Below are positions 16,819-63,692 of a stretch of DNA of 64,000 nucleotides, piece after piece (position 1 is the stretch's first letter; every line of letters starts with the position of its first letter). This stretch comes from Saccostrea echinata (taxonomy: Eukaryota), in NCBI RefSeq assembly GCF_033153115.1, contig NW_026889750.1:36270001-36334000 (forward strand), in the 5' to 3' direction. The translations under genes were made by a program, and so were the position numbers. The notes beneath the pieces were generated by a model, which saw only the letters and a list, made by a program, of their open reading frames with translations, ran no database searches and had not been told where the DNA came from.

Positions 16819-16970
16819 NNNNNNNNNNNNNNNNNNNNNNNNNNNNNNNNNNNNNNNNNNNNNNNNNNNNNNNNNNNNNNNNNNNNNNNNNNNNNNNNNN
16901 NNNNNNNNNNNNNNNNNNNNNNNNNNNNNNNNNNNNNNNNNNNNNNNNNNNNNNNNNNNNNNNNNNNNNN
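16819..16970. other. Assembly gap (N run)
   Basis: Run of n. Confidence 1.
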
Positions 16971-42558: not shown

Positions 42559-43881
42559 CTAATAAGAACAAAGGCATGGTTTTCCCTGCAAAATAAAAAA
42601 TTTCCATTCAGTTAATAAAATATTAAAAATTGATTTTTTGTCAGTTCAATTCCAAGTATTTTCACGAGACTTACCAGTGGTCTCTCGCAGACGTAATTGT
42701 TAACCTGTCCACAGCTGTCAACGTGCCAGTGATATTTGTATGATCTCCAGAAGATACCGCAATTGTAGTCCCCATGTTCATGATAAATTGGTTCCTGACT
42801 GTACCAATCAAATTTGTGGCATGGCTTGACGGTGAATCCCCAGCACCACCTATGTTTGTTTGGTCTCAAAACGTCATTTAAAGCCAACCAGGCTCCTCTC
42901 CTGTCTGCATTGCATACGTGTAAATAATTATAGATTATTATAGATTTAATAAGTGATCATAGAGATTTCGTATTTGAAATATTCTATTTATGACGTAACG
43001 ACTTACATCCATAGATACTGCACATGTGTCTGACGTAGGTGTTTTCGTGGGATTGGTCAATGGATACCAGGTATCCTCCCATGGCAACACATCTCATCTG
43101 CGATAAAATAAACAAAACTTGAAACCGCCGGTTAGACTAAAATCTGTTAGATTGTGCATGATGTAAAATAAAAAGAATACGGTTTAAATATACATGATCT
43201 AGACTTTACATGTTATATGTGTCTTTGAAAAAGATTATTGAGATTCTCCATAGAACAATTGACAAGAATAAGGTACAATTTACTTACAGAAGCCCTGTAC
43301 CAGTTAAGTTTGTCCCTGCTGAACCAGTAACAACGTTTGTTGTACTGATGCCATCCATAAGGACAACCACCAGAAACAACTCTGGCTGCAGCGTACTTAA
43401 AGGCCCTATACCTTGGTGCATTGCCGTAACTGGCCTCAGATACTTTAAAAAGTGAAAAAATAATGTCACAAATAATAATGTTTTTGTAAATAATTGTATA
43501 GTAGGGTTTTAAGTAGAAATAATTGTTGTTACTCAAGCTGTAATTTTCATGTGTATTTTTTGAGTGACGTATGGTGAGAATTATCTAGTTTTTTAATTTT
43601 AAATAACCATTGCATTCTGAACCTTTGACTTTTTCCCAAAATCAGGATGATATAAAACTTTCAATGTTTTCTCTATTTATCTCTTTTTATTTAGACTGTA
43701 CATAAGAAAGGGATTTTGAAATAAATAAATAAAAAAAAAAAAGCACAATTCATTGTTTGATCATATTTTTTTCAACTTCGGCAATAATCGATTATGATAT
43801 TTTTTCAAGAAATCTGGCAGATGAATACATACCAGCTAGGAATGTGGAAACCAGCAAAAGCAAGGCGATAAGTGTGTTCAT
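42559..43881 (-). CDS. Secreted C-type lectin-domain protein, subfamily A copy 1 (perlucin-like), 183 aa
   Basis: Exons (minus): 43881-43833 (MNTLIALLLLVSTFLA), 43442-43288 (..GGCPYGWHQYNKRCYWFSRDKLNWYRAS), 43097-43007 (MRCVAMGGYLVSIDQSHENTYVR..), 42904-42675 (..GAWLALND..EPIYHEHGDYNCGIFW..WHVDSCGQVNNYVCERPL), 42585-42559 (GKPCLCSY*). Introns are GT-AG and in frame, AATAAA follows the stop, and the Cys pattern is long-form CTLD. Confidence 0.92.
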
Positions 43882-44263
43882 GATTGAAGCTTTTCTCAAT
43901 GTCCAATCACACTTCTCATCGTGTATATATACTGAATACAAAAAGAATCAATATCTCATCATTTATTCATACGAACAGTTGCTTAACACAGTGAGACGAA
44001 CGCCTCTTTCCAGCTTCTTCATTATGAACATTAGTTTCCATGTTTGCTTTTCTATACAGTCATCATACGTTTATAACATCTAATCGTCTTAAGATACAAA
44101 AAACAGATGTCAGAATTGTTTTATACATCAGTAATGCATAAAATACCCAAAATCGGACAACTAAAGGGTGTTCCAAAAATACTTAAGGAATGTGCTGAGC
44201 ATTCAGAAGAATTTTATATATAGGAAGGATTGTTGACTTTGTTTGGAGTACTCTCAAGTCACC
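43882..44263. promoter_or_regulatory. Bidirectional promoter of the A1/B1 lectin pair (382 bp between start codons)
   Basis: Divergent ATGs at 43881 and 44264. TATA-like TATATATA at about 43924-43931 (A1 side) and about 44215-44222 (B1 side). Confidence 0.7.
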
Positions 44264-45803
44264 ATGAACGCCTTCCTTGCACTCTGTCTTCTCGTTAGTG
44301 TAATTGCTGGTAAATTATTTCTCAAAATTGCTTCGTTCGATAGTTGAATACATTCAATAATTTTACCGTTTGCCCAAGCTTTATTTTAATTTCTTTTCAG
44401 TTGAAGGCAGCTATGACTATGCTCCCAAATACAGCAGTTTTGGATATGTTGCCGCCAAGATCGCTAAAGGGACCTGTCCTTATGGTTGGAGTTTGTATCA
44501 TGGGAGCTGTTATTATTTTAGCAGAGATAGACTGTCATGGTGGCAGGCTTCTGTAATTATAGCTGATCATTACTTACATTATTTTAAAACGATAGAATTG
44601 TTTTAATATTAATTAATACATAGGACTTGGGAGTATGCTGAACAGAGGATATATAACGTGAGATAATCAGCATTTGATAAGAATTCTTGATACGCTTTTT
44701 CCTTTTTTCTCTGAAATGTTTCAGATGAAATGTGCTTCTATGGGAGGATTTTTATGCAATGTTGACGAAGCCCATGAAAACACATATATCAGACATCACC
44801 TTGCTATGTACGGAGGTACGTTCACAATGACACACCAAAACGGTGTTTTACATTTTAAAAAAAAATGCTTATAATGAAGATAAAGTATTGAATTTTAACA
44901 GCAATGTGACAAATTTTGTACTTTTTATTTTCTAAAGGAAATCGATTTATTCTAAAATGCTGATATCTATTTCTCTCAATTTTTCAATAGTTCTGAAGAA
45001 ATTAGCATATTGTTTCCATGAATCCTAGAAAACGTTCTTATCTAGTGCATAAATAAGAACGATTAATATAACCTGTTTTGTTTTATTGTATCTATTTTGT
45101 TTCATAAACAAAACAATTTAGTCGCCCGCGTGGCGCAGTGGTTTGAGAGTTTGCTCTAGAGTCGCGGTGTAAAGAGTTGATCTTTACGTCGCAGGTTCGA
45201 ATCCCATTACGGGACGAGGAGACCGGTGGTTCTTCGGATGAGACCGTATAAACTGAGGTCCCAGAAGATGCTGACACGAAAAAGATCCCTCACTGCTCAA
45301 TGGCCCTGAGTGCCGAATATAGGTCTAAATTTGCTACCCTCCACCAGCAATTGGTGGCATCTCCACCAATTCTCGATAGGGACGTTAAACAACAAAGAAA
45401 CAATTGAGTAACTCGAGTATTTAAACTATTATATACTTACAGTAACTCCTGGAGCATGGATGGCCCTGAACGACTGTCTTTACCCCAACGCTCACAGATG
45501 GAGCTGGGGATTCACAAAGAGGCGATGTCACAAGTTTGATTGGTACGGTAACGAGCCCGTGTACCATAAAAAGGGAGACTGGAATTGTGGAGCTTTCTGG
45601 TCCAGTTACAAATATCACTGGCATGTCGATAGCTGTGCTCAGAGAAACTACTACGTCTGTGAAATGAAATTGGTAATTTCTTCATTATTTATAGAAGCCG
45701 GAGATGATTTAATAGTAATTGCATGAAGGATTCAATATTGAGTAACATCTATTTATACATTATTTTTTTTGTACAGGGAAAACCATGCAGATGCCAGTAT
45801 TAA
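44264..45803 (+). CDS. Secreted C-type lectin-domain protein, subfamily B copy 1 (perlucin-like), 181 aa
   Basis: Exons: 44264-44309 (MNAFLALCLLVSVIA), 44401-44552 (..GTCPYGWSLYHGSCYYFSRDRLSWWQAS), 44725-44815 (MKCASMGGFLCNVDEAHENTYIR..), 45443-45672 (..GAWMALNDC..EPVYHKKGDWNCGAFW..WHVDSCAQRNYYVCEMKL), 45777-45803 (GKPCRCQY*). AATAAA at 45821. Confidence 0.92.
45121..45400 (+). mobile_element. tRNA-derived SINE (Deu/Nin-like central domain) in lectin B1 intron 3
   Basis: A box TGGCGCAGTGG, B box GGTTCGAATCCC, core ttcggatgagaccgtataaactgaggtccc, tail gggacgttaaacaacaaagaaacaa. Confidence 0.85.
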
Positions 45804-46254
45804 TTCATTGTGGATTTCTTAATAAATGTTTAAACAAGAATTATTTCTCATTGTTAATTAATGCTGTGTTTATTTTACTGAGTCTTTTGACAAACAACCA
45901 TGAATATGTTAAAGAATATAGTTAATAAGAGAAGATTCATTTATTTCAATACAACTCAAATTCAATGATAAAGGAAATGCTGAGAACGTTCTTTATCAAG
46001 AGCTTGTTTCAAAATGCACCAGGCCAGTCTTGAATATTCCGATGGGAAAAAAAACATCAATGCATCAGACCAGTTGGGATATCTCAGTGGAAAACCATTA
46101 AGAATCTCCTTGTTTAAAATGGATCACAGACCAATAAGATTGGGATTGGTTTTAGTCTTTATAAAAAAAAGCTCATCGATATCATTTCTGGTCAATGAAT
46201 TTAGGTTGAATGTAATTCACTACTCATACTTAGATCATTTAATTTCTATTACAA

Positions 46255-46540
46255 TACAATGATCTTGTCAGCACATACAAGCTATCATTGAGTCAAATGC
46301 TGACTGACGTTTTTCATACTAATTGTTGAGCCATTCCATTATTTATGCACTGAACTGTCTACGGATTTTCCTGTTTTTTTCCCGATCATGACAAGGAGCA
46401 CACGGCGGGTGTGACCGGTCGGCAGGGGATGCTCACTCCTCCATGGCACCTGATCCCACCTCTAAATTTTGAGGTCCGTGTTTGCTCTACTCCAAATTTG
46501 TATCATTTCATTGGACTGTTCATTATCTTCATATTTCATT
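46255..46540 (+). mobile_element. 3'-end fragment of the Penelope-like family
   Basis: aaatgctgactgacgtttttcatactaattg..cacggcgggtgtgaccggtcggcaggggatgctcactcctccatggcacctgatcccacct. Confidence 0.75.
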
Positions 46541-48471
46541 CTAGTCAATGCATGTAGTATGTAAGAATGGGAATCTTTTCATAGACTTCAACAATGTAGC
46601 TTTATATTGTTAACGCATTTTGAGTTTATCTCGAAATTTTTTTTATATATTTTTCTTTATTTTTCATTGTAATGATAATGTCTATAGTATTAATTCTCTT
46701 CTTAATGCGCGAGTATATTACAACACACTTCCTAGGAAATGATAAAAAAAAATGTCATTGATGTATACCAATTATATACTGTAAACTAACTTTTATTCGC
46801 GTGCGAGAAGTATCCGCGAGTTCTGCGACCTTCTTTTACTCGGGAATAACACTAAATCCACTGAATTGATACAATTCTAAGGTATCAAATTAATCAAAAG
46901 TATATAAAACACAAATCCATCCCAGCTCATTGCAGACAAAAATACCTGTTTCGAGTAAAATAGAGGGAATAATTCTTGTCCTCGAAGAAAGTATGCTACA
47001 CTGAGGTATAGTTTCGCTTGACTGCGTTTTAGTTACAAAAAAATACGATTTGCCTTTTCTTTTGAATTAATGTCTTTATATAAAAAAATTAATATGCATC
47101 AAACAGAGTTAATTGAAGGAAAATACACAAATCCGATAAGAAAAAATTAAGCAATTAAAACAGATTTTGAAAGGCGAGAATTTAAAACTGGAAAAGTGTG
47201 ACACCAAGTGGATTCGAACCACGACTCTAAAAGTAACTTCGGCACCATGAGCCAGCGGTCTTTTATTTTTAACATCTTTTAAGAGCCAGCGGTCAAACTT
47301 TCTGAGCTAATCTGATCATATAACAAATGGTTACATATATAAATACGAACCAAGTTTCCTTATTTTTTATAGGTTTCTTTTCTTGTTATTTTCGACCCAA
47401 CGACAGGTGTGCCCTTTAGAAAAAAATCCATTTCAAATTATTTCTTACATCCTACCAAAATATCATAATTTTATTTGGGGACAGGCCTGCCTTAAGGATG
47501 CTCCTTATGGTCAATTCTTTTGAATTTCCGAATACATTCTTTCTGCAGTAGAAAACCAGGGATTAATGAACTAGAGGCTGTGTTGACATACATTTTGTAG
47601 ATCATACATAACTGTCTATTTTCATTTTAGTTCATTTATTTTCACTAAAAGTAAGTTTATTTAATGTCTTGTATATATAAGATAGATGTAAAATGGATCT
47701 GTAATATTATTTAAGAATAAGCATTTGAAACAATGTCCTTAATAAAAGATGTATGTATTGAATATTATTTTGTACAAATGTGCCTTGTTTACACTACATT
47801 CTGGACTCAATCTGTCAACTGTTAGAGCGACACAAACTGATAACACCTTCATATACAATTACATCAGAATAAATTGGAAGTAAACATGAAACGAAATTTC
47901 CTGTTATCAAATAGATACAAAATATTGAAAAGATTGAGTTCACACAATAGTCACTTCTAGTCAATTCTATTATAAGTATACAATGCGATAAGAAATTTTC
48001 TTTATGAATTAATATTGATAGTGGTCGATGGTCGGGGGAGGGGGTGTGGCTAGAATATGATAAATCTGTTGTTTTTCTGTACCACAGTGTAGGTATTAGT
48101 ATACTCTTGTATTAATTTCTTTCGTGTTAGAGTAGTTAAGTGTGTTCTTGAAAACTTCTATACTTCAATCACAGTCCAGATACTCCTATACCTTTTTCTT
48201 GTATTATCACCAAAACATAATAGGTGGTTATATCAATAGCAATCTAACTATAAAATTGATAAAAGTCTGAAAAGCTTATGGCAGTGTGTTAAAGTTAAAA
48301 AAATATTTTTCTGTCATCCTTGAGCATTGATTCATTTATTTTCCACACAATCACATCCATAACATGCGAAAGCCTGTAAGTATCAAACAAAAAAAAATAA
48401 ACGCCCATTATCTCGTAATAACGAGATAATTATCTCGTGACTACGAGGAAATTATCTCGTAATTTCGATAT

Positions 48472-48609
48472 CAGGTTCCGGGGCCATGAAACTTAGACGA
48501 GCTCATTTTTGATCTCAGTCTCACTTTTCCACTATTAATTAATTCCTTTGGTAAAAGTGAGACTGAGATCAAAAGTGAACTCGTCTAAGTTTTATGGCCC
48601 CGGAGCCTG
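48472..48609. mobile_element. 138-bp palindromic MITE nested in a 22-bp tandem-repeat element (about 48405-48665)
   Basis: CAGGTTCCGGGGCCATGAAACTTAGACGAG...CTCGTCTAAGTTTTATGGCCCCGGAGCCTG with AT on both sides, interrupting an attatctcgtaataacgagata array. Confidence 0.8.
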
Positions 48610-48719
48610 ATCTCGAAATTAAGAGAAAAGATCTCGTTATTATGAGAAAATTATCTCTTAGTTACAATGTACAGAAAAATATACACGTACGTAAGCTTTT
48701 CTCTTTCCGTCCTTCTTTT

Positions 48720-48724
<5 letters not shown>

Positions 48725-48771
<47 letters not shown>
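48725..48771. repeat. Poly-T tract (about 47 nt)
   Basis: Seen directly in the sequence. Confidence 0.9.
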
Positions 48772-48772
<1 letters not shown>

Positions 48773-51137
48773 ATAATTGCAGGTCGAGGAAATCAAGATT
48801 TATTGAAGCAATCTTTTCTACAATGACTTCCACTGGCAGATAAAACGGAATGTTGGAATGAGTGTCCTCCTAAAATAATTTTATATACTAAGAAAGGCAC
48901 GAGCAAGGACTTAATGCTTTAGGTGTAGGTAGATTAAATTCTAAATGAATTCCTCAGGGTAGGAATCTCTAACCTACCCAAGTAACCGTTTATCAAGTCG
49001 TAAAAAATAATTTAAAAGCCTTGATTTGCATGAGTGAGTACAAAAATACTGTTCTACTATACTACATTTTGCAATTAAAATACTTCTTAAAGAACGAAGA
49101 GAAAATACTTTTTAAAGAACCGGACGTTATTTTTATTTTTTTTTTTACTTGATACTAATACACATGTAGTTAATAATAACAGCTACATGTATATAACGAC
49201 GTCCATTTTGATAATAAAACTAAGAATCATTTTTAAGAATCTTCAGACAGGTCAAGTTTACCTTGCTGTGACAAAATATCATAAGATTATGGTCTAGTAA
49301 TATTTTGACTGAAATTAAACGTAACTTAATAATGTAACCGATAGAAGTAAATTAATAATTGCTGCAGAATATACAGTAAGTGGCACCTCCAATGTTTATT
49401 TCGCCTGCGTGCTCACTTATATGACAACAGTTTGATCAACAATGGCTTCTACAATTTATGCATTTTCACTATATGATCAGAGCCCCAACCTAACTCCAGA
49501 ACCCCTGACCCTGAGGCCTTAAATTTTCAACTAAATTTTATCAGCAGACCAGTGTTCAGAACTGTTCAACAGAAATACTGACAAATCTAATGTAACAATT
49601 TTCAGTAGAATCTCCCCTTGGATGGCATTTGGGGATCGAACATGTAAACCTACAAGTAGTATATCCTCGTGTGTAAAATTGTAAATATAACCACCTTTGT
49701 TTGATAAATAAAATTTTCATTCGTCTCTAGGAATGTTCATTTGAACAACTTCTCAAAAATTTATTGCAGTGAGCCCGTCCAGTAAAAGAAGACAAACCTA
49801 TCTTTTTAAAATTTCGTGTTGATACTTATATGTTGATATTTTATGTTCTATCCTCAAAGCTTTCTTTATAAATTAAAAACAAATTGTTCAGACAAAACTG
49901 AATAAATGATTACCTCCTATTATATAATAATATGATTATTTCGTTTCCTTTACGTCTGCTGTAATTAAAACAGCATTAGCATTTTGTCATTATTTCTTTT
50001 TCCTTTGCTTAGTTAACACCTGCTTTAAAAAGGTGAACGAAACATGCATTTTTCAAAAGTAGGAAACCATTTGACCTCCATAAAATTTTTAGGAATAGCT
50101 GTTCCACTAAAAACATTTCTTTTAAAAAATGACAGAAATTTGCTTTTTATCAATATACACTGTGTACTTGTGTACTGTAAAAGAAACAAATTGTAAGTAA
50201 TTAACCTATAAAATAAAAGAAGTTTTACGTGATTGCAGTCATGAGAAAAATTGTTTGTTGACGATATTTTTGTTTTAATCTCTACCTGGGACCTGTAATT
50301 CATTTTCTTTAAAATGATATTTCCAGATAATGTATCAAATGAAAACATCTGGCGAGTAAATTTTTATATTTTAAGTATATTATCAATTTTCTCCTTCAGT
50401 GTTATTAATCTTATTTGAAGAGAACTTTTTAAACAATATAGATACAAAAATTTAGTGACAAACGTATGGAAAATTATGAAGCCCATAAAATCACGTATGT
50501 GGGGCTTAGATAACATTACATTAATTCCACAAGATATGTTGAATAAAAAGTTACTATTATTCTGTATACCCTGATCAGGAAACACCAATGTACATGTACA
50601 TATATTTTCTTTCAATGTCAATAGACAAGAAAAAATAAGGAAACCCATGAAACATGCCCGAGAAATCAGACATTGCTAATTTTGCAGAGCAGATGTCACA
50701 CAAGTTCTTCATGCATCGTCACCATAATCAAAACTGAAGTCGAAATAATTATTAACTTTCACCTAATTTACAATGTTTCTTTAATGCTATAATTTGATAG
50801 ATAACGGCAAAAGATAGACATACCAACTCACAGTGCTCAACGATGATTTATTTAATATCATTAAAGAATTACAGGACAATTGTGATAACTACATGGTATT
50901 TAAACTGTGATTAACACTTCAAATCTGACCAATTACCCCGCGATCTCAATAAGGAGAGTCATAATTACCGCCAAATCAGCTTATATAGATATGTGAAAAA
51001 AACGTTACATTATCAACGTTTATGCAGAAGTTTCTTTTTTAAAATGAATTTATATATTATACATATATTTTATTTTTTCCGACTAACCGATTACAGATTT
51101 TCTAACCGATTTCTGTCCTTCCGACCAAGTAACCGGT

Positions 51138-51272
51138 NNNNNNNNNNNNNNNNNNNNNNNNNNNNNNNNNNNNNNNNNNNNNNNNNNNNNNNNNNNNNNN
51201 NNNNNNNNNNNNNNNNNNNNNNNNNNNNNNNNNNNNNNNNNNNNNNNNNNNNNNNNNNNNNNNNNNNNNNNN
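51138..51272. other. Assembly gap (N run), preceded by hAT-type subterminal motifs (taaccga)
   Basis: Run of n. ccgactaaccgattacagattttctaaccgattt..taaccggt lies at 51079-51137. Confidence 1.
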
Positions 51273-51424
51273 TGTATTTGATTGGACTCCGAAGAGTGTA
51301 GCAGTTATCTCGAATTTCACGTAAGTATTAAAAAATCCTGATTTTGGTAAATAGAAATGTATAAGCGTAAGCGTTAGTTAGCAAACATTTTTATTCAATA
51401 CCTACATTTATATATCTATAAAAA

Positions 51425-52674
51425 TCAGTACTGGCATTTACAAGGTTTTCCCTGAAACAAAAATTTAAAAAAATATTAACTTTCTTTATTCAATTAAAAG
51501 CCAATATCAATTCAGAATACTCAAGATAACTAAATACTCGAACAATGAAATTACCTTCAGTTTAAAGAAAGTCCTCTTTAAATCAAACACTGGTATTTAA
51601 CATATTAAATAAAAATTTACCAATTTCATTTCACAGACGTAGTAGTTTCTCTGAGCACAACTATCGACATGCCAGTGATATTTGTAACTGGACCAAAAAG
51701 CTCCACAATTCCAGTCTCCTGTTTTATGGTACACAGGCTCGTTTCCGTACCAATCAAACTTGTGACATCGCCTCTTTGTGAATCCCCAGCTCCATCTGTG
51801 AGCGTTAGGGTAGAGACAGTCGTTCAGAGCCATCCAAGCTCCAGGAGTTACTGTAATTATAATTAGTTAAAAGACTCGTATATGGTATCTGTAGAATGGC
51901 ATGCATATCAACAACATGAGGTTAAAGACAACAGCTTGAAACAATTCCCAGTTGCATTACATGAAAAGTTGAACAGAAATGTGAACTTTTGTTGGAGATC
52001 CAAATCTTTTGGTATTATTTGGAACAATGCGCCCTCGTAAAACAAATCCCTAATAGCTAATTTTGTCCTCGACCTACCTCCATACATAGCAAGGTGATGT
52101 CTGATATATGTGTTTTCATGGGCCTCGTCAACATTGCATAAAAATCCTCCCATAGAAGCACATTTCATCTGAAATGTTAAGTAAAATTCCGTGACTTGTA
52201 ATAACTGTAGAAAATCAACAAAACTCTTACGTAAATATAATTCACATATGACTTTTTGGGAATATATCAAGATGATCAAGATTAAACTTTAATAAGACTA
52301 GAAGGAAGAGGGTATATTTTTCTATTTCTAAGGCTTGATAATTGTGCTAGTATAATCAAGCTGATATTTACGGAGGCCTGCCACCATGACAGTCTATCTC
52401 TGCTAAAATAATAACAGCTCCCATGATACAAACTCCAGCCATAAGGACAAGTCCCTTTAGCGATCTTGGCAGCAACATATCCAAAACTGCTGTATTTGGG
52501 AGCATAGTCATAACTGCTTTCAACTGTAACTAAAAAATAATAATGAAAAAAAAATTAAAATAAAAAATAATTAAATTATTTGAATAAATAAAAACTCATT
52601 TTCTATTCCCCTTTGTCACTATTATTACCTATCGTTACAGAAACCACGAGTGTTAAGATAAGTAAACAATTCAT
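51425..52674 (-). CDS. Secreted C-type lectin-domain protein, subfamily B copy 2, 181 aa
   Basis: Exons (minus): 52674-52629 (MNCLLILTLVVSVTI), 52523-52372, 52168-52078, 51850-51621, 51451-51425 (GKPCKCQY*). Same exon sizes as B1 (46/152/91/230/27), GT-AG introns, intact frame. Confidence 0.92.
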
Positions 52675-53017
52675 GACTGTAGCTAGCAGCATATTGCTAA
52701 TTGTTCATATTATGTTCTTTTTATAAGTTTGTATCCTTTTCCTACATATGTGAAATGTAAATATTCACGCCTTTTTCGTGTCAAAAACATGCCAGAAAAC
52801 TGCATTTGTGCTGATCCAAGGGAAAGTAATCAAGCACATTGCATGTATTGAACTACGAACAGATATGTATGATATCAGGGCGGGAAATGATCCCTTGTTA
52901 ATGTGATATTATAACGTAGAACACAAATATTATTGTACTTGTTCAAATATGATTGTATAGAGTATATATACCGAGGACAGTTTTGGAAACCAGTAGATTA
53001 CTAAAATCAGCCCCAGC
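52675..53017. promoter_or_regulatory. Bidirectional promoter of the B2/A2 lectin pair (343 bp)
   Basis: Divergent ATGs at 52674 and 53018. TATAAAA (minus) at about 52719-52725, TATATATA at 52963-52970, GC-box CAGGGCGGGAA at 52876-52886, ATATTCACGCC at 52761. Confidence 0.72.
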
Positions 53018-54195
53018 ATGAATGCAGTGGTTTTTGCTTGTCTTTTGCTCTCAGCAACACTCGCTGGTAAGTTAAGCATCACATTAATTCCAGTATTTAC
53101 TTTAAAAGTTCATATTAGTTAATCAATACCAATGTGTGATATCATGACATTTTTATAAGAAAATGTATTAATTCAATGCTACTGAACTCGCTACAAAATA
53201 TTCCAAAATCTTAAGTTAGCTTAAATAACAAATAAAGAATTATTTTATTTTATAAATATTTCAAATAAAAATAATCTCTCAGTATATATATTTCAACAAA
53301 ATTTTCAACCTTGCAGTCTCACAAGCCAGCTATAATATAAGGCCAAGGTACAGGGCCTTTAAGTACGCTGCTGCCAGAGTTGTTGCTGGTGGTTGTCCTT
53401 ATGGATGGCATCAGTACAACAAACGTTGTTACTGGTTCAGCAGGGACAAACTTAACTGGTACAGGGCTTCTGTAAGTAAATTGTACCTAACTATTGCCCT
53501 TTGTTTAAACCGAGAATCCCCTTTAAAGACAACTTAAACAAGAAGAAAATAGAAATTGTATATTTAAACTTATTTTTTTGAATTAAATGCAATCCAGTAC
53601 CCCTCGGATTAACAAGCGAGTTTAAGTTTTGTTTACTTAATGTAGATGAGATGTGTTGCCATGGGAGGATACCTGGTATCCATTGACCAATCCCACGAAA
53701 ACACCTACGTAAGACACATGTGCAGTATCTATGGATGTAAGTCGTTACGTCATAAGAAGACTATTTCAAATACGAAATCTCTTTGATCACGATGAGTACT
53801 TATTAAATCTATAATAATCTATAATTATTTACACGTATGCAATGCAGACAGGAGAGGAGCCTGGTTGGCTTTAAATGACGTTCTGAGACCAAACAAACAT
53901 AGGTGGTGCTGGGGATTCACCGTCAAGCCATGCCACAAATTTGACTGGTACGGTCAGGAACCAATTTATCATGAACATGGGGACTACAATTGCGGTATCT
54001 TCTGGAGATCATACAAATACCACTGGCACGTTGACAGTTGTGGACAGGTTAACAATTACATCTGCGAGAGACCACTGGTAAGTTTCATGAATATACCTGG
54101 AATTAAACTGACAAAAAATATCAAATGTGAATATTTTATTTACTGAATGGAAATTTTCTATTTTGCAGGGAAAACCATGCCACTGTTCTTATTAG
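53018..54195 (+). CDS. Secreted C-type lectin-domain protein, subfamily A copy 2, 183 aa
   Basis: Exons: 53018-53066 (MNAVVFACLLLSATLA), 53317-53471, 53646-53736, 53848-54077, 54169-54195 (GKPCHCSY*). Same exon sizes as A1 (49/155/91/230/27). AATAAA follows the stop. Confidence 0.92.
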
Positions 54196-54639
54196 CAATA
54201 TTTCTAAAATAAAGATTTGTTCTACTTGATACCGTGTTCTGTGGATATGTCAGTCAGCAAATATGTCAATTATATATTTTCATCATAATAACAACGTGTA
54301 AAGAAAGATTTTTGGGGACATTACTTATGAAGTTACTTCAACTTCAAACTGTTTCTCTAGATTTAAAATTATTTCAAGAATACCAGCCCATATAAAGCCT
54401 ACTGATAGCGATTCAAGAAATTCTGTCGTAGTTATAACCTCACGGTGCTATAGAAATACTACAATTCTATTCTAGAAATTTATTGTTTATTTTTATATTT
54501 CCGTCTATTCCAAAGTTTGTTTGACATTATCTTTTATGTCCAGTAAAAAATATGTTGTCTCTCCCCCACCCCCCTTTCCCCGATGGGAAAAAAGTCTTAC
54601 TGGTATCAGCATTGATATACATGTACATGTATGTCATAA

Positions 54640-54755
54640 ATGAAATATGGAGATAACGAACAGTAATCAAGCTCAAAAGTCCACTGAAATAAAACAAATA
54701 GGGAGCAGAGCAAGCACGGACCTCTAAAAGCATCAGAGGTGAGATCAGGTGCCAA
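54640..54755 (-). mobile_element. Short 3'-end fragment of the Penelope-like family
   Basis: ggagataacgaacagtaatcaagctc..gggagcagagcaagcacggacctc..gtgagatcaggtgcc is the reverse complement of the family end. Confidence 0.65.
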
Positions 54756-55250
54756 TCGACATTTTTCGCTTTAATCAATGCGAAATAGATATTTTTTTTG
54801 CTCGAGATAATTAAGCTTTTTAATCTGAAGAGTTTTCTAACAAAGAGTCATAAAAACCAATTCTTCAATTCTATGGGTGTATTGAAATCATTTCTACTGA
54901 AAAAGAGTGGTTTTTCGAATAATTGTATTTTAATTGAATTGAATCTACAAATATTTTTGTATTTGATTGGTATATAGTATGTCAATGTTGCACCATTAAT
55001 TTACGATAGTTTGTCTTTTTTTCTTGCATTTACAGAGTATTCAAAAATAAATAAATAAAAAAAAATGAAAGAAAGAAAGAGCTGGCTATGACTTTACGAT
55101 GAAATGCATCGGTCGAAAAGGAAGAAACAGTTTTATTTTGATTTAGACCTGCTAGTATTTTTTCACAGCAGATTCAGCACGAACGAAGAGAGATAAGTCA
55201 AGTGTGCAAACCTATTTTAAAATAGAAATTAAATGACGAATTCTATGGAA

Positions 55251-55589
55251 TGGTTGTTTCTATGTTGTTTAACGTCCCATTCGAGGATCTTTCACTCATA
55301 TAGAGACGTTACCTGTTTGCCGGTGAAGAGCTTCATATTTAGACTTATACTCGGCACTGTACACGGGCCATTGAACAGTGAGGGAGCTTTATCATGCCAA
55401 TGCCCACCGTGAAACGGGACCTCGGGTTTTAAGGTCTCATCCGAACGACCCGTGACTTTCATTTCTAGTGCCGAGCGCTTGGCGAAGGAACTATCTATGT
55501 TTACGTCTTAGGTTTGACGCGAACGAGAATCGAACTCGGGTCTCCCAATCACGAAGCGAGCGCCCTACCACTAGGCTACCGTGAACGGT
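55251..55589 (-). mobile_element. tRNA-derived SINE (same family as 45121-45400)
   Basis: Minus strand: GGTAGCCTAGTGG A box, GAGTTCGATTC B box, cggatgagaccttaaaacccgaggtcccg core, gggacgttaaacaaca tail. Confidence 0.85.
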
Positions 55590-56010
55590 GCAAATTCTAT
55601 GGAAGAAGCAGACAGACCTTGGGCGACAACCGGTATTCTCAAGTATCGTACAGGCAAACCTCCATCCCGATATCTTGTTATTGTCATATAAAAGCAAGAA
55701 GATCATGATGGTGAAACTTACTGTTAACTCGGAAGAAAGATGTGAGGATGCCTACGAGAGAAAGAAAACAAATACATGTACTGGGATCTGACAGATGAAA
55801 TACACAGAAAAGGATGGAGCGCATGGGTATTTCTCTATGGGGATTGGCTGTAGAGGATTCCCAGCACAACCAATCTAGAGAGCCATTACAGTCCTGGGAA
55901 TCACAGGAAGGGACAAAAGATGAGGAATACAAAGACCAACAAACACAGCATAGAAGCCATCATACTGGCTGTGGAGAAAAAGAGCAGACTAGAACTGGAA
56001 ACCATTCATA
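55590..56010 (+). mobile_element. Decayed C-terminal restriction-like endonuclease of a non-LTR retrotransposon (HERO/NeSL/R2-group)
   Basis: ORF 55588-55791 DLGRQPVFSSIVQANLHPDILLLS..K..MVKLTVNSEERCEDAYERKK, then frameshifted GW..GIGCRGFPAQ..LGITG. This matches the LRPD...ELTVPWE....A.ERK..KY...VGCRGF RLE signature. Confidence 0.7.
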
Positions 56011-56119
56011 GATGGACAGTAATTTAGCCAATCACAGGTTATAGATCGAAGCAACCGATGACGAGTGGAGCTGAGGTTTTTTCTGTCTTTCTCTCTGAAA
56101 GCTCAATTTGAAATAGGTA

Positions 56120-56310
56120 GCACCTGTTCCTTCGCCAAGCACTCGCACTTTGAAGTGAAATTGCAGGTCTTTCGGATGAGGTCTAAAAAAACCAAGGCAA
56201 CGTGTCATGGCAATCTAAAGAACCCTCACTCCTCAAATGCTACATGTGCCAAGTAAAAGCCTAAACATAATCCCTTTAACAGTATTTGGTGACGTCTTAT
56301 ACGAGTGAAA
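56120..56310 (+). mobile_element. 5'-truncated SINE fragment
   Basis: tgttccttcgccaagcactcgcac..ggtctttcggatgag..aagaaccctcactcctcaa matches the SINE core. Confidence 0.6.
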
Positions 56311-56313
56311 TAA

Positions 56314-56316
<3 letters not shown>

Positions 56317-56400
<84 letters not shown>
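56317..56400. repeat. (TA)n microsatellite
   Basis: About 42 TA units. Confidence 0.97.
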
Positions 56401-56403
<3 letters not shown>

Positions 56404-56771
56404 AGAATAAGTTCAGGTTTGGAGCAAAACCAAAACTAAAGGCTGTTGAAATTTAAAAAAAAAACTTTTTAAAACAAGGAATTACATGTAACACTTAAGG
56501 GACAGGACAGCTTGAGGAGGGGGGGGGGGGTTAGTACCCTCATTTCTTGGTAGTTGTACCAGATATAATCGCAATGTTTCAAATTCACAAAATAAATGCT
56601 ACAAAATAAACATACATTTTTCCCAGTACAATTATATTCTAATTAGTTTTGTAGTAGTTTTAAAGTAAAATATAATTGGTTTACCTGATTTTTTTTCTAA
56701 ATATACTCAAGTATTTTTCTGGAAGAAAAATAATTAGTATTACGTATGATTGCGTATATCTATTATTTTAT

Positions 56772-57276
56772 TGGACTTTTGCGAGAAGCACTGACTTTTA
56801 CACTCGACGGCTTACTTTGACATTTAAACATGTGTCATGTACGGAGGTACGGACTTGATATTAGATCAGAAAACCTTAGTAGTAGTCATAGGTATGGTGT
56901 TAGGGGCACTTACATGATTTACTTGTATGCAATCAACACAAGAGATGATGGGAGGAAGAATAACATAACTTAAAATACCTTATTCGTGAGGGATAGTATT
57001 TCCTTTCAATCTCATTTTATGAAAGAATCAAATAAGGAAAAAATACAATCGAAATGAAAACTTGGCAGTAGTTGGTCAAATGGGGAAGGAGGGGGGTTAG
57101 TATAGGGTGTTTCTCTTTCCCCTCCCTAGAAAAACGTAGTATGTTCTTTGAAATGAATTATTATCGTTTAATTATTTGATAAGCTAAATATTTATATCGA
57201 AAAGAGTTGCTGTATATTGTCCCAGTGTAAAAGTAAGCCGTCGAATGTAAAAGTCAGCGCTTCTCGCAGAAGTCCA
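56772..57276. mobile_element. MITE with TIRs of about 50 bp
   Basis: tggacttttgcgagaagcactgacttttacactcgacggcttactttgaca pairs with tgtaaaagtaagccgtcgaatgtaaaagtcagcgcttctcgcagaagtcca. Confidence 0.8.
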
Positions 57277-58744
57277 TTATGAAATTAAAGTGTGGATAGA
57301 GATATGATAATTACATGCAGTTTCGAAATTGGAATTATTGAAATCTCATGTAGTTAAATTGAATGGTTATAGAAAATATATCGATAGAAACTATCCCGGA
57401 CAATGTAGACGTGTAATTTCTTTTAGTTCCCATTCTCGCCTTTGCATGTTACTTCTTATTTTGAAACTATGAGTGGATAAGGCACAATGTTTTATGCGAA
57501 ATATAAGCGTTCAATAATGGAAAAGGAATACCTGGTATATTTTGTTTTGAAAATTTGCTTTTCAATGAAAATTTTCCAAATTATATCCTAATTATAACGA
57601 AGCATTGTTTTTATTGTTTACTTTAAAGATAATATTTATCAGAGAATGATATGATGTGCAAATATATTTGGCACGACACAAATTTGCCTCTCTTTGAGAA
57701 ATGTTTCTTTATAGTTTACAGGATTTATCCATTGTCATTTGCTATCTTTACATTTGGCAGATTGTTATCGATAACATTAATATTAATATATTCAGATGTG
57801 TTTGACAATGTGCTTTAAATTCGAATACTTTATAGAAATAACATGTGCAAATTCCCAGAGTAATTACTAATACTTAGAGAACCTTTTTAAAATTTTAATA
57901 GAGGAATACTTTGAAGACTGAAAGCACAGTTGATTAGAGGACATTTTAAATCCGGAATGACATTTAAAAAATACAGAAAAATTCATATTTATCTTTTGTT
58001 TTATTTCATAAGGATCAAAGAAGACACGTGTAAATATTTCTCTTACGGTTATAATGAAGCACTGAATTCATATTTTTCGAGATGCATTGTTTCATAACAT
58101 GCTAAGACACATTATTCAATTTTTCAGGACAGTCGTCCAAGTTATGAAGCAAAGCATGTTAAAAATTTTAATTTAATGCTTATATTTATATTATCTGATC
58201 ACATTTTAATGGATAAAATTTACCTTTATTTTTTTTAATTACATTAAACAGCCAATCTGTTTTGTATGCAAATAGTATAGAATCGTGAGGAATGGTGTTT
58301 TAAATCTCCCACTCATATGACATTGTTTTTTAACAAATGTTTCTCGACGAATTAGATTCAACTTATTTATATGAAAGTATGATATAATAAAATATGACCT
58401 CAAGGCACTGCGAACTTGAGCTTGTACAGGAACATATAGTACAATTTTTAATTTAAAATAGAGGAAAAATTTAATTTTTTTTTATTTCACATTTACCATA
58501 GTGATAAGAAAGAAAAAACAAATTTGGATGAAAGCTTAAAAACTGAAAAATTCCATCAATTGGGATTTATTAAAGATAACTCCAACATGGTTAATATTTT
58601 GTTCACTGATTGCTTTATAATGATTCTTTTTTTTTTACATTAATAACAAATACTTCCTATGTAGCTGAATAGTAAACTTCAAAACCAAATGAAATCGAGA
58701 ATAAAATATTGATGCAAAAGTTTATTTAAAATAGTTAGTGATGA

Positions 58745-61179
58745 TTAATATTGGCACCTGCAAGGTTTTCCCTGAAAAATAAAGAGAAAATGCAGTTACT
58801 CTTTGTAAACAATTTCAGTTTGATATTTAAAAGGTTTTTACATTTAAATTTCAATAAGCGGAAAAAGAATTCTCTTCCTGTTGATTTTGAGATGTTAGAT
58901 AATTGTTTGTGTTTCAAATAAAAAAAAAGCATTAAGATGCATTTTACCAATTTCATTTCACAGACGTAGTAGTTTCTCTGAGCACAGCTATCGACATGCC
59001 AGTGATATTTGTAACTGGACCAGAAAGCTCCGCAATTCCAGTCTCCCTTTTTATGGTACACGGGCTCGTTACCGTACCAATCAAACTTGTGGCATCGCCT
59101 CTTTGTGAATCCCCAGCTCCATCTGTGAGCATTAGGGTAAAGGCAGTCGTTCAGGGCCATCCAAGCTCCAGGGGTGACTACCATTGGAATGATATACAAT
59201 TTAAGTAAAACAAAAAGAATTCCAATGCTTGGTAAATATAACATTTCAATTGCTTCTTCACACTCTAAAAAGATAGATATATGCATTCTCTTTCAAATAA
59301 AAAAAAGATACAATAAAAGGAAAATTTGCTAATTACATTTTTTTGTTTCGCTTATCATTTGTGAAAGGTTATCTTACTTTTAAAATTGTGAGTAATTTGT
59401 TATCTTACCTCCATACATAGCAAGGTGGTGCCTGATATATGTGTTTTCGTGAGCCTCGTCAACATTGCATAAAAATCCTCCCATAGAAGCACATTTCATC
59501 TGAAAGAATACATGGCTCCGATATTTACAAATCAAATACTTTCTCTAATTGCAATGCAAAAAAAGAATACAGTGAACTGTTATGATATAAAATTACACTA
59601 CGGTAATTTTCAAAACAATAAAATCTCGACATGTAATTTCGAAACCTGTGCTACTACTGATATAATTATATGACAAATTCATCTCTTTATTCATAACAAA
59701 TTGCTGATCCAATTACTGCAGGTAAACATCAAATATAGTATATCCTCTGATAAAACATAAACTAAAACAAGTTTTCTACCACTTGACCAATAATTTAGCT
59801 AAAATAACATAATTATTTACCGACGCTTGCCACCATGACAGTCTATCTCTGCTGAAATAATAACAGCTCCCATGATACAAACTCCAGCCGTATGGACAGG
59901 TCCCTTTAGCGATCTTGGCGGCAACATATCCAAAACTGCTGTACTTAGGAGCATAGTCATAGCTGCCTTCAACTGTAATTGAAAAAAAAAATAAAATTAT
60001 ACCTTTATATATTCAAATGCTACTGAATACTAGTATAGTACCGGAAACTATCTCCGAGTACGAAAATAAGCATCAGTATTAAAGTAGATGTTTTGGAGGA
60101 AAAAATTCTTCCTCTTTCCCTAATTATGACTCAAACGACAGACGACCAATATTATATAAATGCTATGCCATGATTAAAAATATCAGGAACTGAATATTCT
60201 TAGTAATGTTAAAGATTTGTATCTTTATTACAAAGATCCTCGCCTACTGACTTAGGCTATTGAGATATAAGTAGACTCAAGGGTACAAATACTTTAAGCT
60301 TTAATTGATGGAAAACTGCAAAATAATGTTTAAATCTCGTACTTATAAGAAATCAAGAAACGATATATCGTAATTTGAATCAAGGTTATATTCTTTCAAA
60401 AGTCAAAGTCAGTGGGCGATGAGATAATGAAGGTATAAAGTAATTCATTCTCAAATTTTGGGGTTTATATGATTTTGATAACGATGATGATGATTGAATA
60501 ATTAATTGTATGTTGTTTAACGTCCCATTCGAGAATTTTTCACTCATATAGAGACGTCACCATATACCGGTGAAGGGCTTCAAATTTTGACCTTTACTCG
60601 GCACTTAGGGCCATTGAGCAGTGAGAGATCTTTAGCGTGCCAACGCCTGCCGTGACATGGGGCCTCGGTTTTTAAGGTCTCATCCGAAGGACCCGCAACA
60701 CTTTCACTTCAAAGCGGCGAGCGCATGGCGAGGGAACAGTTGCTACCCATTTTTTATCGACTTAGGTCAGTCGCGGCCGAACTCACGACCTCCCGATCAA
60801 GACGATGATAATGAAAGTATAATGCAATAATTCTTTATTCAATCTTTTTACTTTAATAATTCTGTTACTAATGATTAAAATGCTAATGAAAATATTCCGT
60901 CTCTTATATGCAGGAAACTATTGAATTTATCATATTTTAGATTTATTTTAGGACTGGTAGAATACGGCATTGAATAACAAAGTTAATTGGTAACATAACA
61001 ATCACTTGTTCTTATTACTTGTTTTTAATATGGAAATCTAAATTCTAAATTCAGTCTAAAGTCTAAATTTGAATTATGAAGAGTTCGAATCAGAGATAGA
61101 CAGGTCCTTATCCTGTATTTTCTTTTTTCTTACCTGATGCTACAGCCACCAACACTGATATAGCAAGGAAGCAGTTCAT
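58745..61179 (-). CDS. Secreted C-type lectin-domain protein, subfamily B copy 3, 181 aa
   Basis: Exons (minus): 61179-61134 (MNCFLAISVLVAVAS), 59972-59821, 59499-59409, 59177-58948, 58771-58745 (GKPCRCQY*). Exon sizes are identical to B1/B2. Intron 1 is enlarged and contains a SINE. Confidence 0.91.
60495..60801 (-). mobile_element. tRNA-derived SINE in lectin B3 intron 1
   Basis: Same core and tail as the other SINEs (tgttgtttaacgtcccattcgagaa...aaggtctcatccgaagg). Flanked by near-identical acgatgat(g/a)atga at 60481 and 60802 (possible TSD). Confidence 0.85.
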
Positions 61180-61507
61180 GATTGATTCCTACGGTATATA
61201 TTAAATGAATGCAAAGTCATCCCTTATATAAAGTCTTATTTGGATTTGTACGTGAATATACGAGAAGATATTCACGCCCTTTTCATTTCAAAAAGAAAAA
61301 CATGTATGCTTTCGCAAACAACATATTTGCTGATAAAGATGTATGCAAAGCCCTAATAATAATCGAAATGGGAGGTAACAGGGCGGGAATTAAGCTCTTG
61401 TTAAGTTGAAAATTTATTGTAGTACATGACATTTCTTACAAGGGGTGAGAAGTATATATACATCATCAAAGTTCGAAATACCTGTGAGTTACCACGATAA
61501 ATTTAAA
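61180..61507. promoter_or_regulatory. Bidirectional promoter of the B3/A3 lectin pair (328 bp)
   Basis: Divergent ATGs at 61179 and 61508. TTATATAA at about 61224-61231, TATATATA at 61453-61460, CAGGGCGGGAA at 61379-61389 and ATATTCACGCC at 61268. The last two motifs are shared with the B2/A2 spacer. Confidence 0.72.
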
Positions 61508-63388
61508 ATGAACTCAATCGTTCTACTATGTCTTCTGGTCTCATCTATCCTTGCTGGTGGGTAAAGTGTGAGAACGTATTCAAAATCTTTTTTTTCTGTT
61601 AATAATTTCAATCGTTTAAATGTTTATTCTTATTTAGCTCTAGGAACAAGTCTCAAAAGTGTATTAGGGTCAGGAATTGCAGGGGAAATGTTTAAAACAT
61701 TTTACTTATAATACCAATAAAAACAGTTGATTTAAATGAAATAATAAATACACTCTTTTGCAGTCTCACAAGCCAGCTATAACATAAAGCCAAGGTACAG
61801 TGCCTTTAAGTACGCTGCTGCCAGAGTTGTTTCTGGTGGTTGTCCTTACGGATGGCATCAGTACAACAAACGTTGTTACTGGTTCAGCAGGGACCGGTTG
61901 ACTTGGTATAGAGCTTCTGTAAGTGTACTTTCACGTGCTTTAAAATACATCGTCACTGATTAATGCTTGCAAAAGAGTGTCCCTGCTCAAGCTAAAGTAT
62001 ACCAACATTAGGATAAAATGCTTAAAAATAAACACATTTTAGATGAGATGTGCTGCCATGGGAGGATACCTCGTCTCAATTGACCAGTCCCACGAAAACA
62101 CATATGTCAGACACATGTTGAGCGTCTATGGATGTAAGTTTTCCTTTATTTTTTGTTTGATATAACCCAGTGAAATCGAAATAAAAGAAACCACAGAGTC
62201 TGCCACATCTGTTTCATGTTTGTATGTTTAACTGACAAAAGACGATAAGGAACAACTAACAACTTTTTGCATTACAAGCGAGATGACTTCACATTTTCCT
62301 CCGTCAACTTTCCTTATCCTGTGGTAATATCCCGCTATCACCTGCATATGGTGTTTACATCTCCCAACTTATTCGATACACAAGGGCATGCTCTGAGTAC
62401 GATCAATTTTTAAACCGAGGCAGGCTACTTACAGATAAGTTGATGTTACAGGGATTTCAGCAACCTTGTTCAAAGTCAGCATTTCTTAAATTCCATTTTC
62501 TTTATAATGGCCTTGTTAGCAAATATAACCTAACAGTGGGAGGTATTTTGTATTATGTGTTTCATACCAATTGTTAGGCCTCTGTTTTTATACTGAATTT
62601 GACTACGGATTGTTCCGTCGACCTCATCAATACATAGGGCTTATGGTGGCTATGACCGGTCGACAGGGGATTCTTACTCCTTCTTGGCACCCTGATCCCA
62701 ATTCTGGAATTCTGGAAATCTGGGGTCCGTGTTTTATGGCCTGTTCACAGATTTGTATTGTTTTTAGATTTTTTTGAGATCGATCACTGTTCGTTATCTT
62801 CATTTCCTTTGATATACAATAGCAATTCCAACTTTAAAATGTGCTAAAAAGCAGCTTAAATCTAAGTTTTAAAATCGAGAAAAAATTATTTCTGAGATCT
62901 TCTTTAGACAGAAGAGGAGCATGGCTGGCTTTAAATGATATTCTGCGACCAAACAAACATAGATGGTGCTGGGGATTCATTGCAAAACCATGTCACAAAT
63001 TTGACTGGTACGGCCAGGAACCAGTTTACCATACTACTGGTGACTATAATTGTGGTGCATTTTGGAGATCATACAAATACCACTGGCATGTTGATAGCTG
63101 TCAACAGAAAAACTATTACGTATGCGAGAAATCTTTGGTAAGTAATTTAATGGAGTTTAAGACAGTTGATTAAAAGCAAAAGTATATTTAGCTTAATCAG
63201 GATATATTGTGTTGTTCAAATAAAACTAATATTGATACACCTTTAAAACATTTGTTTACTACTATAATTATGTAAATTAACATGATTTTCTAATATATAA
63301 ATGCCTAATATACACGTTATTTACTGATAAATTAAAGAAGATTTTCATCTACTTTTTGCAGGGAAAACCATGTCGTTGTGCATACTAA
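61508..63388 (+). CDS. Secreted C-type lectin-domain protein, subfamily A copy 3, 183 aa
   Basis: Exons: 61508-61556 (MNSIVLLCLLVSSILA), 61764-61918, 62043-62133, 62908-63137, 63362-63388 (GKPCRCAY*). Exon sizes are identical to A1/A2. Intron 3 is enlarged by a Penelope-like fragment. Confidence 0.91.
62160..62805 (+). mobile_element. Penelope-like retroelement 3' fragment in lectin A3 intron 3
   Basis: YPSEIEIKETTESATSVS..KRDDF..VNFPY..NIPLSPAYGVYISQLIRYTRACSEYDQFLNRGRLLTDKLMLQGFQQ, followed by the family 3' end. Confidence 0.85.
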
Positions 63389-63665
63389 ATATTTAATAAA
63401 TAAATTTTGAAGCAAAATGCAAATTATTGTTTTGTCTTTAAATGATTAGTTGGTCATTTGTACAAAACGTATATAAAACTCCCTCTTGTATTTGAGACAT
63501 TTAAAACTGATTTAATTACGCACTTGAAACATTTCTTTTGATAACCTAATTATACATTATACATTATAATTTTGCAAATTAACAGGATATTTTATAATAT
63601 CTGTGTTTAACACACATGTTATTTTCTGATAACCCAAAACAAGATTTTAATCCACTTTTTTTCAG

Positions 63666-63692
63666 GGAAAATCTTGCCATTGTGCCTACTGA
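63666..63692 (+). CDS. Duplicated alternative terminal micro-exon of lectin A3 (GKSCHCAY*)
   Basis: ttttttcag|GGA AAA TCT TGC CAT TGT GCC TAC TGA, followed by ATTAAA at 63701. The 3' UTR (aattttgaagcaaaatgcaaa...tttgtacaaaacgtata) duplicates the one after exon 63362-63388. Confidence 0.6.
   Translation, partial: GKSCHCAY

Follow-up and report, generated by a model that had tools for sequence, protein, structure and literature searches.

Related genes that lie head to head on a short promoter region are familiar from the collagen IV pairs (COL4A1/A2, A3/A4 and A5/A6) and from histones H2A/H2B, whose products are proven partners in complexes and whose shared promoter elements have been mapped. 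Among proteins built on the C-type lectin-like domain (CTLD), the snaclecs are the classic precedent for obligate heterodimers; CD94/NKG2 and other CTLDs of the natural killer complex are also disulfide-linked heterodimers, type II membrane receptors encoded by clustered paralogues that are not head to head. C-type lectin genes number in the hundreds in bivalves, and as a rule each is seen as one exchangeable unit of an expanded immune or shell-matrix repertoire. We describe here an array of CTLD genes in the rock oyster Saccostrea echinata, the first part of which lies in a 64-kb stretch of contig C1 (C1:36270001-36334000; hereafter the window, whose coordinates are used unless a contig is named). 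The genes belong to two subfamilies, A and B, and are arranged as divergently transcribed two-gene cassettes, each with one A gene and one B gene. Our literature search found no paper on this lectin family or on its A/B head-to-head pairing.

The locus resembles collagen IV and H2A/H2B in that related genes stand head to head on a short promoter region and the pair has been duplicated, each copy keeping both classes. It differs in that the oyster spacers share only one TATA-like element per side, and in that the cassette is known here from its genes. With CD94/NKG2 it shares the clustering of CTLD paralogues; unlike those receptors, the oyster proteins have signal peptides and no membrane anchor, and their genes are head to head. 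The explanation that we favour, with moderate confidence, is an ancient head-to-head pair of paralogues that selection has kept and that has been copied as a unit, the compact spacer between the two genes most likely coupling the expression of A and B.

The window contains six intact five-exon CTLD genes, which form three divergent A/B pairs with GT-AG at all junctions. An open reading frame listing combined with tblastn searches, with exon peptides taken by coordinate as queries, gave six three-exon CTLD sets between 42.6 and 63.2 kb and no CTLD exons in the first 42 kb of the window; phase-consistent junctions were then read codon by codon. Exons were joined from their coordinates only for translation, for ratios of nonsynonymous to synonymous divergence (dN/dS) and for trees, while searches used single exons, open frames or identical database proteins. 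The genes and the spacers between their start codons are as follows.

42559..43881, minus strand: A1 gene, exons 43881-43833, 43442-43288, 43097-43007, 42904-42675 and 42585-42559, encoding a secreted CTLD protein of 183 amino acids that ends in GKPCLCSY
43882..44263, no strand: spacer 1 (382 bp), TATA-like elements at 50 bp (A1) and 49 bp (B1) upstream of the start codons
44264..45803, plus strand: B1 gene, exons 44264-44309, 44401-44552, 44725-44815, 45443-45672 and 45777-45803, 181 amino acids, ending in GKPCRCQY
51425..52674, minus strand: B2 gene, exons 52674-52629, 52523-52372, 52168-52078, 51850-51621 and 51451-51425, 181 amino acids
52675..53017, no strand: spacer 2 (343 bp), opposed TATA-like elements at 55 bp (A2) and 51 bp (B2) upstream of the start codons
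53018..54195, plus strand: A2 gene, exons 53018-53066, 53317-53471, 53646-53736, 53848-54077 and 54169-54195, 183 amino acids
58745..61179, minus strand: B3 gene, exons 61179-61134, 59972-59821, 59499-59409, 59177-58948 and 58771-58745, 181 amino acids
61180..61507, no strand: spacer 3 (328 bp), opposed TATA-like elements at 55 bp (A3) and 51 bp (B3) upstream of the start codons
61508..63388, plus strand: A3 gene, exons 61508-61556, 61764-61918, 62043-62133, 62908-63137 and 63362-63388, 183 amino acids

Exon lengths are identical within each subfamily, at 49/155/91/230/27 nt for A and 46/152/91/230/27 nt for B. Exon 1 is always a short signal-peptide exon, and the 27-nt exon 5 encodes G-K-P/S-C-x-C-x-Y and the stop codon, with a good acceptor before it and a poly(A) signal within 7-30 nt after it. 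Three of the models are identical to RefSeq proteins: A1 to P0001 (XP_061189043), which also matches Pfam Lectin_C, B1 to P0073 and B3 to P0071. An earlier note made from the DNA letters had described six intact CTLD genes in two clear subfamilies and three divergent A/B pairs; the GT-AG models, the RefSeq identities and the spliced RNA contigs described below bear this out, and the ATG-to-ATG distances that it gave (382, 343 and 328 bp) are exact on direct reading of the sequence. Its expectation that automated annotation would call these genes 'perlucin-like' also proved correct, as RefSeq names the A1 product 'perlucin-like protein [Saccostrea echinata]'; we treat this as an automatic annotation name only.

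The array continues past the window. When all of the assembly was scanned in six frames with A1 exon 4, two further pairs came up just beyond the window end, A4(-)/B4(+) and A5(-)/B5(+) at C1:36339761-36351924, with all four genes intact and with spacers of 315 and 309 bp. Thus the three cassettes of the earlier note are those inside the window, and the array itself holds five, in the order <A1 B1> <B2 A2> <B3 A3> <A4 B4> <A5 B5>, with 4.5-6.4 kb between cassettes. It extends from 42559 to 81924 in continued window coordinates (C1:36312559-36351924), that is, five cassettes in 39 kb. All ten genes are intact, with exons and phases of one common pattern. RefSeq bears out five of the models, four exactly (A5 is P0027, beside the three above) and B5 with a difference of one residue, which is extra in P0065.

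Four further relatives are found on contig C12. Two of these, in C12:13353648-13369449 (L024-L026), are long forms, g2 (P0011, 320 amino acids) and g3 (P0081, 321 amino acids), in which an N-terminal cysteine-rich region and a glycine-rich linker precede a B-like CTLD and a CxC tail. On the minus strand g3 forms a sixth head-to-head pair with g4 on the plus strand, their starts 361 bp apart. The g4 model is identical to RefSeq P0243 and has the same exon phases, a Lys/Thr-rich insert and the tail K-E-S-C-S-C-T-F. A maximum-likelihood tree places g4 with the A clade, and all B types and the long forms across the branch (support 90/85); since g4 is a long branch, its placement on the A side is provisional. 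With that placement, each of the family's six head-to-head pairs in the genome has an A-side member and a B-side member. On C1 as on C12, the paired genes lie on opposite strands, with 5' ends less than 1 kb apart and no gene between, and in each of the six the duplicated pair keeps one member of each old class, as in collagen IV.

A possible objection is that the arrangement is a historical accident, in which an old inverted duplication was followed by mechanical copying through unequal crossing-over, A and B being separate lectins with their own ligands and their own TATA promoters. We regard this as possible, and as less probable than the explanation that we favour. Survival of a hetero-pair with a spacer of about 300-380 bp on two contigs argues against it, and three further properties of the locus, taken up in turn here (the spacers, the age of the A/B split and the intactness of the genes), point the same way.

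The spacers are far steadier in length than any intron. Across the five C1 spacers (309-382 bp) length varies 1.2-fold, with a coefficient of variation of 0.08, whereas eight introns vary 1.8- to 12.8-fold, with coefficients of variation of 0.20-1.14. Spacers 1-3 each match only themselves in the 923-Mb assembly. The introns and the DNA between cassettes hold short interspersed nuclear elements (SINEs) and other repeats, and spacers 1-3 are free of repeat copies. One element is mapped as follows.

45124..45420, plus strand: tRNA-Ser-derived SINE inside B1 intron 3, with an ARAGORN tRNA-like head at 45124-45215

This SINE has 6313 candidate copies in the genome and a word depth of about 4000 in RNA contigs. 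The same family is present in B3 intron 1, which is 1161 bp long, and A3 intron 3 (774 bp) contains a dispersed repeat of about 550 bp (62250-62850) with more than 9200 candidate genome copies. This agrees with the claim in the note that insertions occurred in introns of B1, B3 and A3 while the shared spacers remained without them.

The only words common to all five spacers are TATA-like, and their enrichment is far above that in shuffled sequences. There is one such element per side, and its distance to the start codon is 50-55 bp for the A genes and 49-59 bp for the B genes. The spacer is best described as two putative opposed TATA-type core promoters about 205-283 bp apart, apparently constrained against insertions. 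A relic of an inverted duplication would show as mirror-image similarity between the two halves of the spacer, and none was found.

The A/B split is old. Mature A and B proteins are about 61% identical, and synonymous divergence (dS) between the subfamilies is saturated; within a subfamily the proteins are 81-100% identical, with dS from 0.09 (A4-A5) to 1.4 among A genes and from 0.26 (B1-B2) to 2.4 among B genes. With dN/dS at 0-0.15, all ten array genes are under strong purifying selection. For example, the mature proteins of B1 and B3 are identical at a dS of 0.36, although their signal peptides differ. Both the saturated A/B divergence and the absence of decay in any of the ten C1 array genes speak against the accident account.

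Proteins of both types are present in database clusters from Ostrea edulis, Crassostrea virginica, Magallana gigas, M. angulata and S. cucullata, with about 4-6 of each type per species. Ostrea, Crassostrea, Magallana and Saccostrea are all represented in the tree, both in the A clade (support 100) and among the B types; since all four genera have both types, the split between A and B predates the divergence of these oyster genera. Pinctada has more distant relatives (about 47% identical). We tried RefSeq accession order as a proxy for gene order (A and B alternate in O. edulis and S. cucullata, and the order is AAAABBB in C. angulata), and rejected it because B3 and B5 of S. echinata carry far-away numbers.

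A metagenome contig scan with exon-4 alignment returned one contig, L030 (3961 bp, Crassostrea-like), which has an A-type exon 4 with about 90% identity to the A proteins of C. virginica. The other end of the contig holds, in opposite orientation, the end of a B-type exon 4 that matches a segment of C. virginica P0008, together with exon 5. The A-type and B-type genes are thus tail to tail, 3.6 kb apart. Two neighbouring cassettes of like orientation would be expected to meet in just this way, as A2 and B3 do here; what the contig shows is adjacency rather than a head-to-head arrangement. The A-type exon 4 (L030:71-301; the B-type end is at L030:3920-3961) contains an unusual stretch, H-H-R-W-C-C, which is one residue longer and has Cys in place of a Trp. 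In the 900 bp downstream of the exon no CxC exon was found, and this A-type gene may be a decaying copy.

Several lines indicate how the array grew. Spacers 4 and 5 are homologous (z = 40 against shuffles, with 71% identity over 213 bp), as are spacers 2 and 3 (local score z = 11 against shuffles), and A and B types alternate strictly in all five cassettes. These two results uphold the proposal of the earlier note that the cassette is the unit of duplication. Likewise its inversion stands, one inversion of cassettes 2-3 being enough to account for the orientations. In both subfamilies dS groups copies 1, 2 and 3 apart from copies 4 and 5. Spacer 1, on the other hand, aligns to no other spacer, though dS for A1-A2 and B1-B2 is the lowest or near-lowest, and the A and B gene trees are only partly congruent: with outgroups included, A3 joins the Ostrea A types, while B3 stays with B1 and B2. 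Part of A2 has a history shared with A1.

53343..54291, plus strand: gene-conversion or recent-exchange tract of A2 with A1 (42462-43416), a continuous blastn alignment of 967 bp at 87.5% identity

The tract takes in introns 2-4 as well as the 3' flank, and it breaks off within exon 2; A1-A2 dS is 0.17. A corresponding A4/A5 tract is 808 bp long at 96% identity, and among B genes only the exons align. We read these alignments as whole-cassette duplication, probably followed by gene conversion of single genes. Because gene conversion and partial exchange affected single genes and not cassettes, they favour the accident account, as does the failure of spacer 1 to align. A naive estimate gives a chance of about 1e-4 for five adjacent divergent hetero-pairs among 10 genes, but as a null this is misplaced, all copies being descendants of a single ancestral pair.

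The cassettes could be suspected of being an artefact, since an assembly gap lies between cassettes 1 and 2.

51138..51272, no strand: assembly gap (run of N), intergenic, between cassettes 1 and 2, starting 152 nt past the B2 stop codon

Mis-assembly, or duplication of a haplotype around the gap, would then have produced the repeated cassettes. We consider this highly improbable. The copies differ from one another, with dS from 0.09 to more than 1 and with different introns, repeat insertions and spacers; the distinct paralogues A1, B1, B2 and B3 occur in RNA contigs; and individual copies are matched by RefSeq models and by proteins of the congener. The B2 coding sequence ends at 51425, and an AATAAA lies 30 nt beyond the stop, before the gap. 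Since the gap is beyond both the stop and the poly(A) signal, and since no CTLD exon was found next to it, no exon or reading frame crosses it. The B1-B2 intergenic distance is 5621 bp as assembled, although the true distance and the content of the gap are uncertain. A second run of N in the window (16819-16970, 152 N) is outside the lectin array.

Expression was read from Logan contigs of four libraries (runs X1-X4), representing two samples of one study; the library type was guessed to be RNA, which the spliced contigs confirmed. The contigs reproduce introns 1-3 of A1 exactly (joints 42904/43007, 43097/43288 and 43442/43833), as well as B1 intron 3. Loose contig ends after 45673 read exon 5 of B2 (X1 and X3) and of B3 (X4), and these are exon 4-5 junctions. 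All four libraries have A1 exons (with 0-3 differences) and B exons of B1, B2 and B3, so that A and B types are transcribed in the same samples. The co-expression of A and B proposed in the note is therefore borne out as co-occurrence of spliced A and B contigs in four libraries of one study, and only to that extent.

The A1 contigs reach 50 nt upstream of the ATG. There, at the TATA-like element, the A1 ATG exon shows an acceptor at 43932/43931 that is joined to 44367-44423 in X3 and to 45441-45474 in X2, with a minus-strand GT..AG. For B2, runs X2 and X3 have a stretch, matched by eye to B2 intron 3 (51962-51993) and ending before GTAATG, that is placed directly ahead of exon 4, which suggests an alternative donor or an extra exon.

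Several points weigh against coupled expression and a selectively kept pair. First, in a periodic array unequal crossing-over will copy an A together with a B regardless of what they do, and it keeps the 1:1 ratio mechanically, so the five copies are not independent proofs and the 1:1 count is weak evidence for a dosage requirement. Second, no motif is common to all five spacers beyond the one TATA-like element per side, mirror similarity between the A-side and B-side halves was looked for and not found, and two independent promoters that merely abut would give the same picture. Third, the RNA contigs are unstranded and come without tissue or quantitative information, and some A1 transcripts seem to start inside B1, in antisense, which would make the promoter picture more complex; depth is low here, however, and contigs can be chimeric. 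Fourth, the head-to-head orientation was not directly seen in other genera, L030 giving adjacency only. Fifth, the intact long form g2 has no partner on C12, where only g2 exon 1 is homologous to the region upstream of g3; unpaired copies can therefore persist. The lack of a shared spacer motif and the intact solo g2 count at the same time in favour of historical accident, and so do the fact that tandem CTLD arrays are commonplace in bivalves and the character of the two proteins: acid/base complementarity between A and B was considered and rejected, as both are basic.

We continue to favour an old paralogue pair kept by selection and copied as a unit, working as follows. In each cassette A and B are transcribed apart from one another across a unique, repeat-free spacer of 309-382 bp, in which each gene has its own putative TATA-type core promoter some 50 bp ahead of the ATG, the two being opposed. 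A spacer this compact most likely couples their expression, so that a cell makes A and B together. The array grew by whole-cassette duplication, with one inversion of cassettes 2-3 and with later local gene conversion that homogenised some copies. Our inference is that the spacer serves as a single regulatory unit and that A and B act jointly.

The protein sequences bear on whether such partners might also be joined. Pfam PF00059 (Lectin_C, cut-off 22.6 bits) hit P0001 (A1) with 41.6 bits, P0073 (B1) with 34.9 and P0011 with 38.9. All six positions of the long-form CTLD cysteine framework (C0-C0', C1-C4, C2-C3) are present in 10 of 10 proteins, which align with solved CTLDs. The calcium-site-2 motifs EPN/QPD and WND are replaced, by EPI or EPV in A and EPV in B, and by WHVD in both. 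Mature chains have about 166 residues, isoelectric points of 8.5-9.5, about 20% aromatic residues and a high His content; an N-glycosylation motif is found only in B5. A search of the ESM Atlas for look-alikes gave generic CTLD clusters only.

Among solved structures, the closest relatives are mannose-receptor-family CTLDs (FcRY, PLA2R and MRC2; E values of 1e-26 to 1e-17) and DC-SIGN. Like the snaclecs (botrocetin, 1fvu), the oyster proteins are CTLD proteins in two subfamilies, but the kinship is not close: botrocetin and mucrocetin scored E values of about 1e-6, over a partial domain for several chains, against 1e-26 to 1e-17 for the mannose-receptor family. The oyster proteins differ further in that about 25 residues extend them at the N terminus and a CxC tail follows at the C terminus; to our knowledge, snaclecs have neither. 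Bivalve 'perlucin-like' and other tandem lectins (such as codakine, 2vuv, a solved bivalve CTLD) share the Lectin_C domain, the small secreted architecture and tandem amplification; the oyster A and B proteins are unlike them in the EPN/QPD and WND motifs noted above, and a strict A/B head-to-head pairing is not described in the papers that our search covered.

Beyond the framework, A proteins have an extra pair of cysteines in the beta3-beta4 region (R-W-C and K-P-C contexts), and B proteins have a differently placed pair (N-D-C and R-R-C) and one more cysteine in strand beta2, conserved in all genera. The total is 10 in A (11 in A1 and A2) and 11 in B, an odd count that is conserved in four genera. 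All family members end in CxC. To judge from its sequence, this tail is a plausible inter-chain disulfide site, which would serve homo-oligomers as well as hetero-oligomers.

A stronger proposal than ours goes back to the earlier note, which took A and B for subunits of a 1:1 secreted hetero-oligomer. In its strong form both would be obligate subunits, probably joined by disulfides, and the cassette would serve to supply them in equal doses. In its support are the five A and five B genes of the array and the roughly equal numbers of A and B proteins in the five other oysters, the CxC tail on its own exon in every member, the conserved odd cysteine of B, the spliced A and B contigs in the same libraries, and the analogy with head-to-head pairs of the collagen IV alpha1-like/alpha2-like kind. 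Yet most A proteins have an even cysteine count, which leaves no evident unpaired cysteine for a partner; the long-form relatives, one of them unpaired, have the CxC tail as well; and the snaclecs, which were the cited model, are distant in sequence. As a whole we hold this obligate version to be unlikely. The same tentative standing applies to an oyster heteromeric secreted lectin in which A and B would be joined through their CxC tails, with the cassette kept since before the genera split and amplified while holding 1:1 dosage. Physical assembly of A with B, for example through those tails, is the weakest step of the argument; it is outside the confidence that we attach to the coupled cassette, and we rate it as possible, though less likely than not.

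Some details of the locus concern annotation. The terminal exon of A3 is doubled, the two copies being 304 bp apart.

63666..63692, plus strand: second (duplicated) copy of the A3 terminal mini-exon, encoding GKSCHCAY and a stop

The first copy (63362-63388) encodes GKPCRCAY, is directly followed by AATAAA and thus has the better poly(A) signal; 63692, which had been taken as the end of the third cassette, is the end of the second copy. RefSeq P0025 (232 amino acids) has exons 1-4 in common with our A2 model and differs in the last exon. RefSeq P0045 ('hepatic lectin-like', 251 amino acids) joins A3 exons 2-3 (61764-62133) to B4 exons 2-5 (C1:36342150-36343581), skipping A4, which is on the opposite strand. 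The structures of P0045 and P0025 would be either read-through transcripts or annotation mis-joins. Outside the array, a 440-residue open frame on the minus strand (window 10783-12102) contains a tyrosinase central domain (PF00264, E = 1e-9), which marks a predicted tyrosinase gene about 30 kb upstream of the lectin genes.

The locus provides an annotation lesson, in that the A3-B4 and A2 models are apparently mis-joined and the name 'perlucin-like' hides the A/B structure. It also offers, from a mollusc, a small natural candidate for a bidirectional promoter of about 330 bp. Even if A and B should prove not to be coupled, the locus would stand as a clear example of cassettes that were duplicated and then altered by gene conversion while strong purifying selection acted; the heteromer, if true, would be an invertebrate, non-venom counterpart of the alpha/beta CTLD heterodimers. 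In sum, this is an old conserved two-gene cassette, amplified five-fold and probably co-regulated. Two lectin subfamilies locked in such a conserved cassette with a compact promoter region give rise to the testable idea that oysters have co-regulated, possibly heteromeric lectins.

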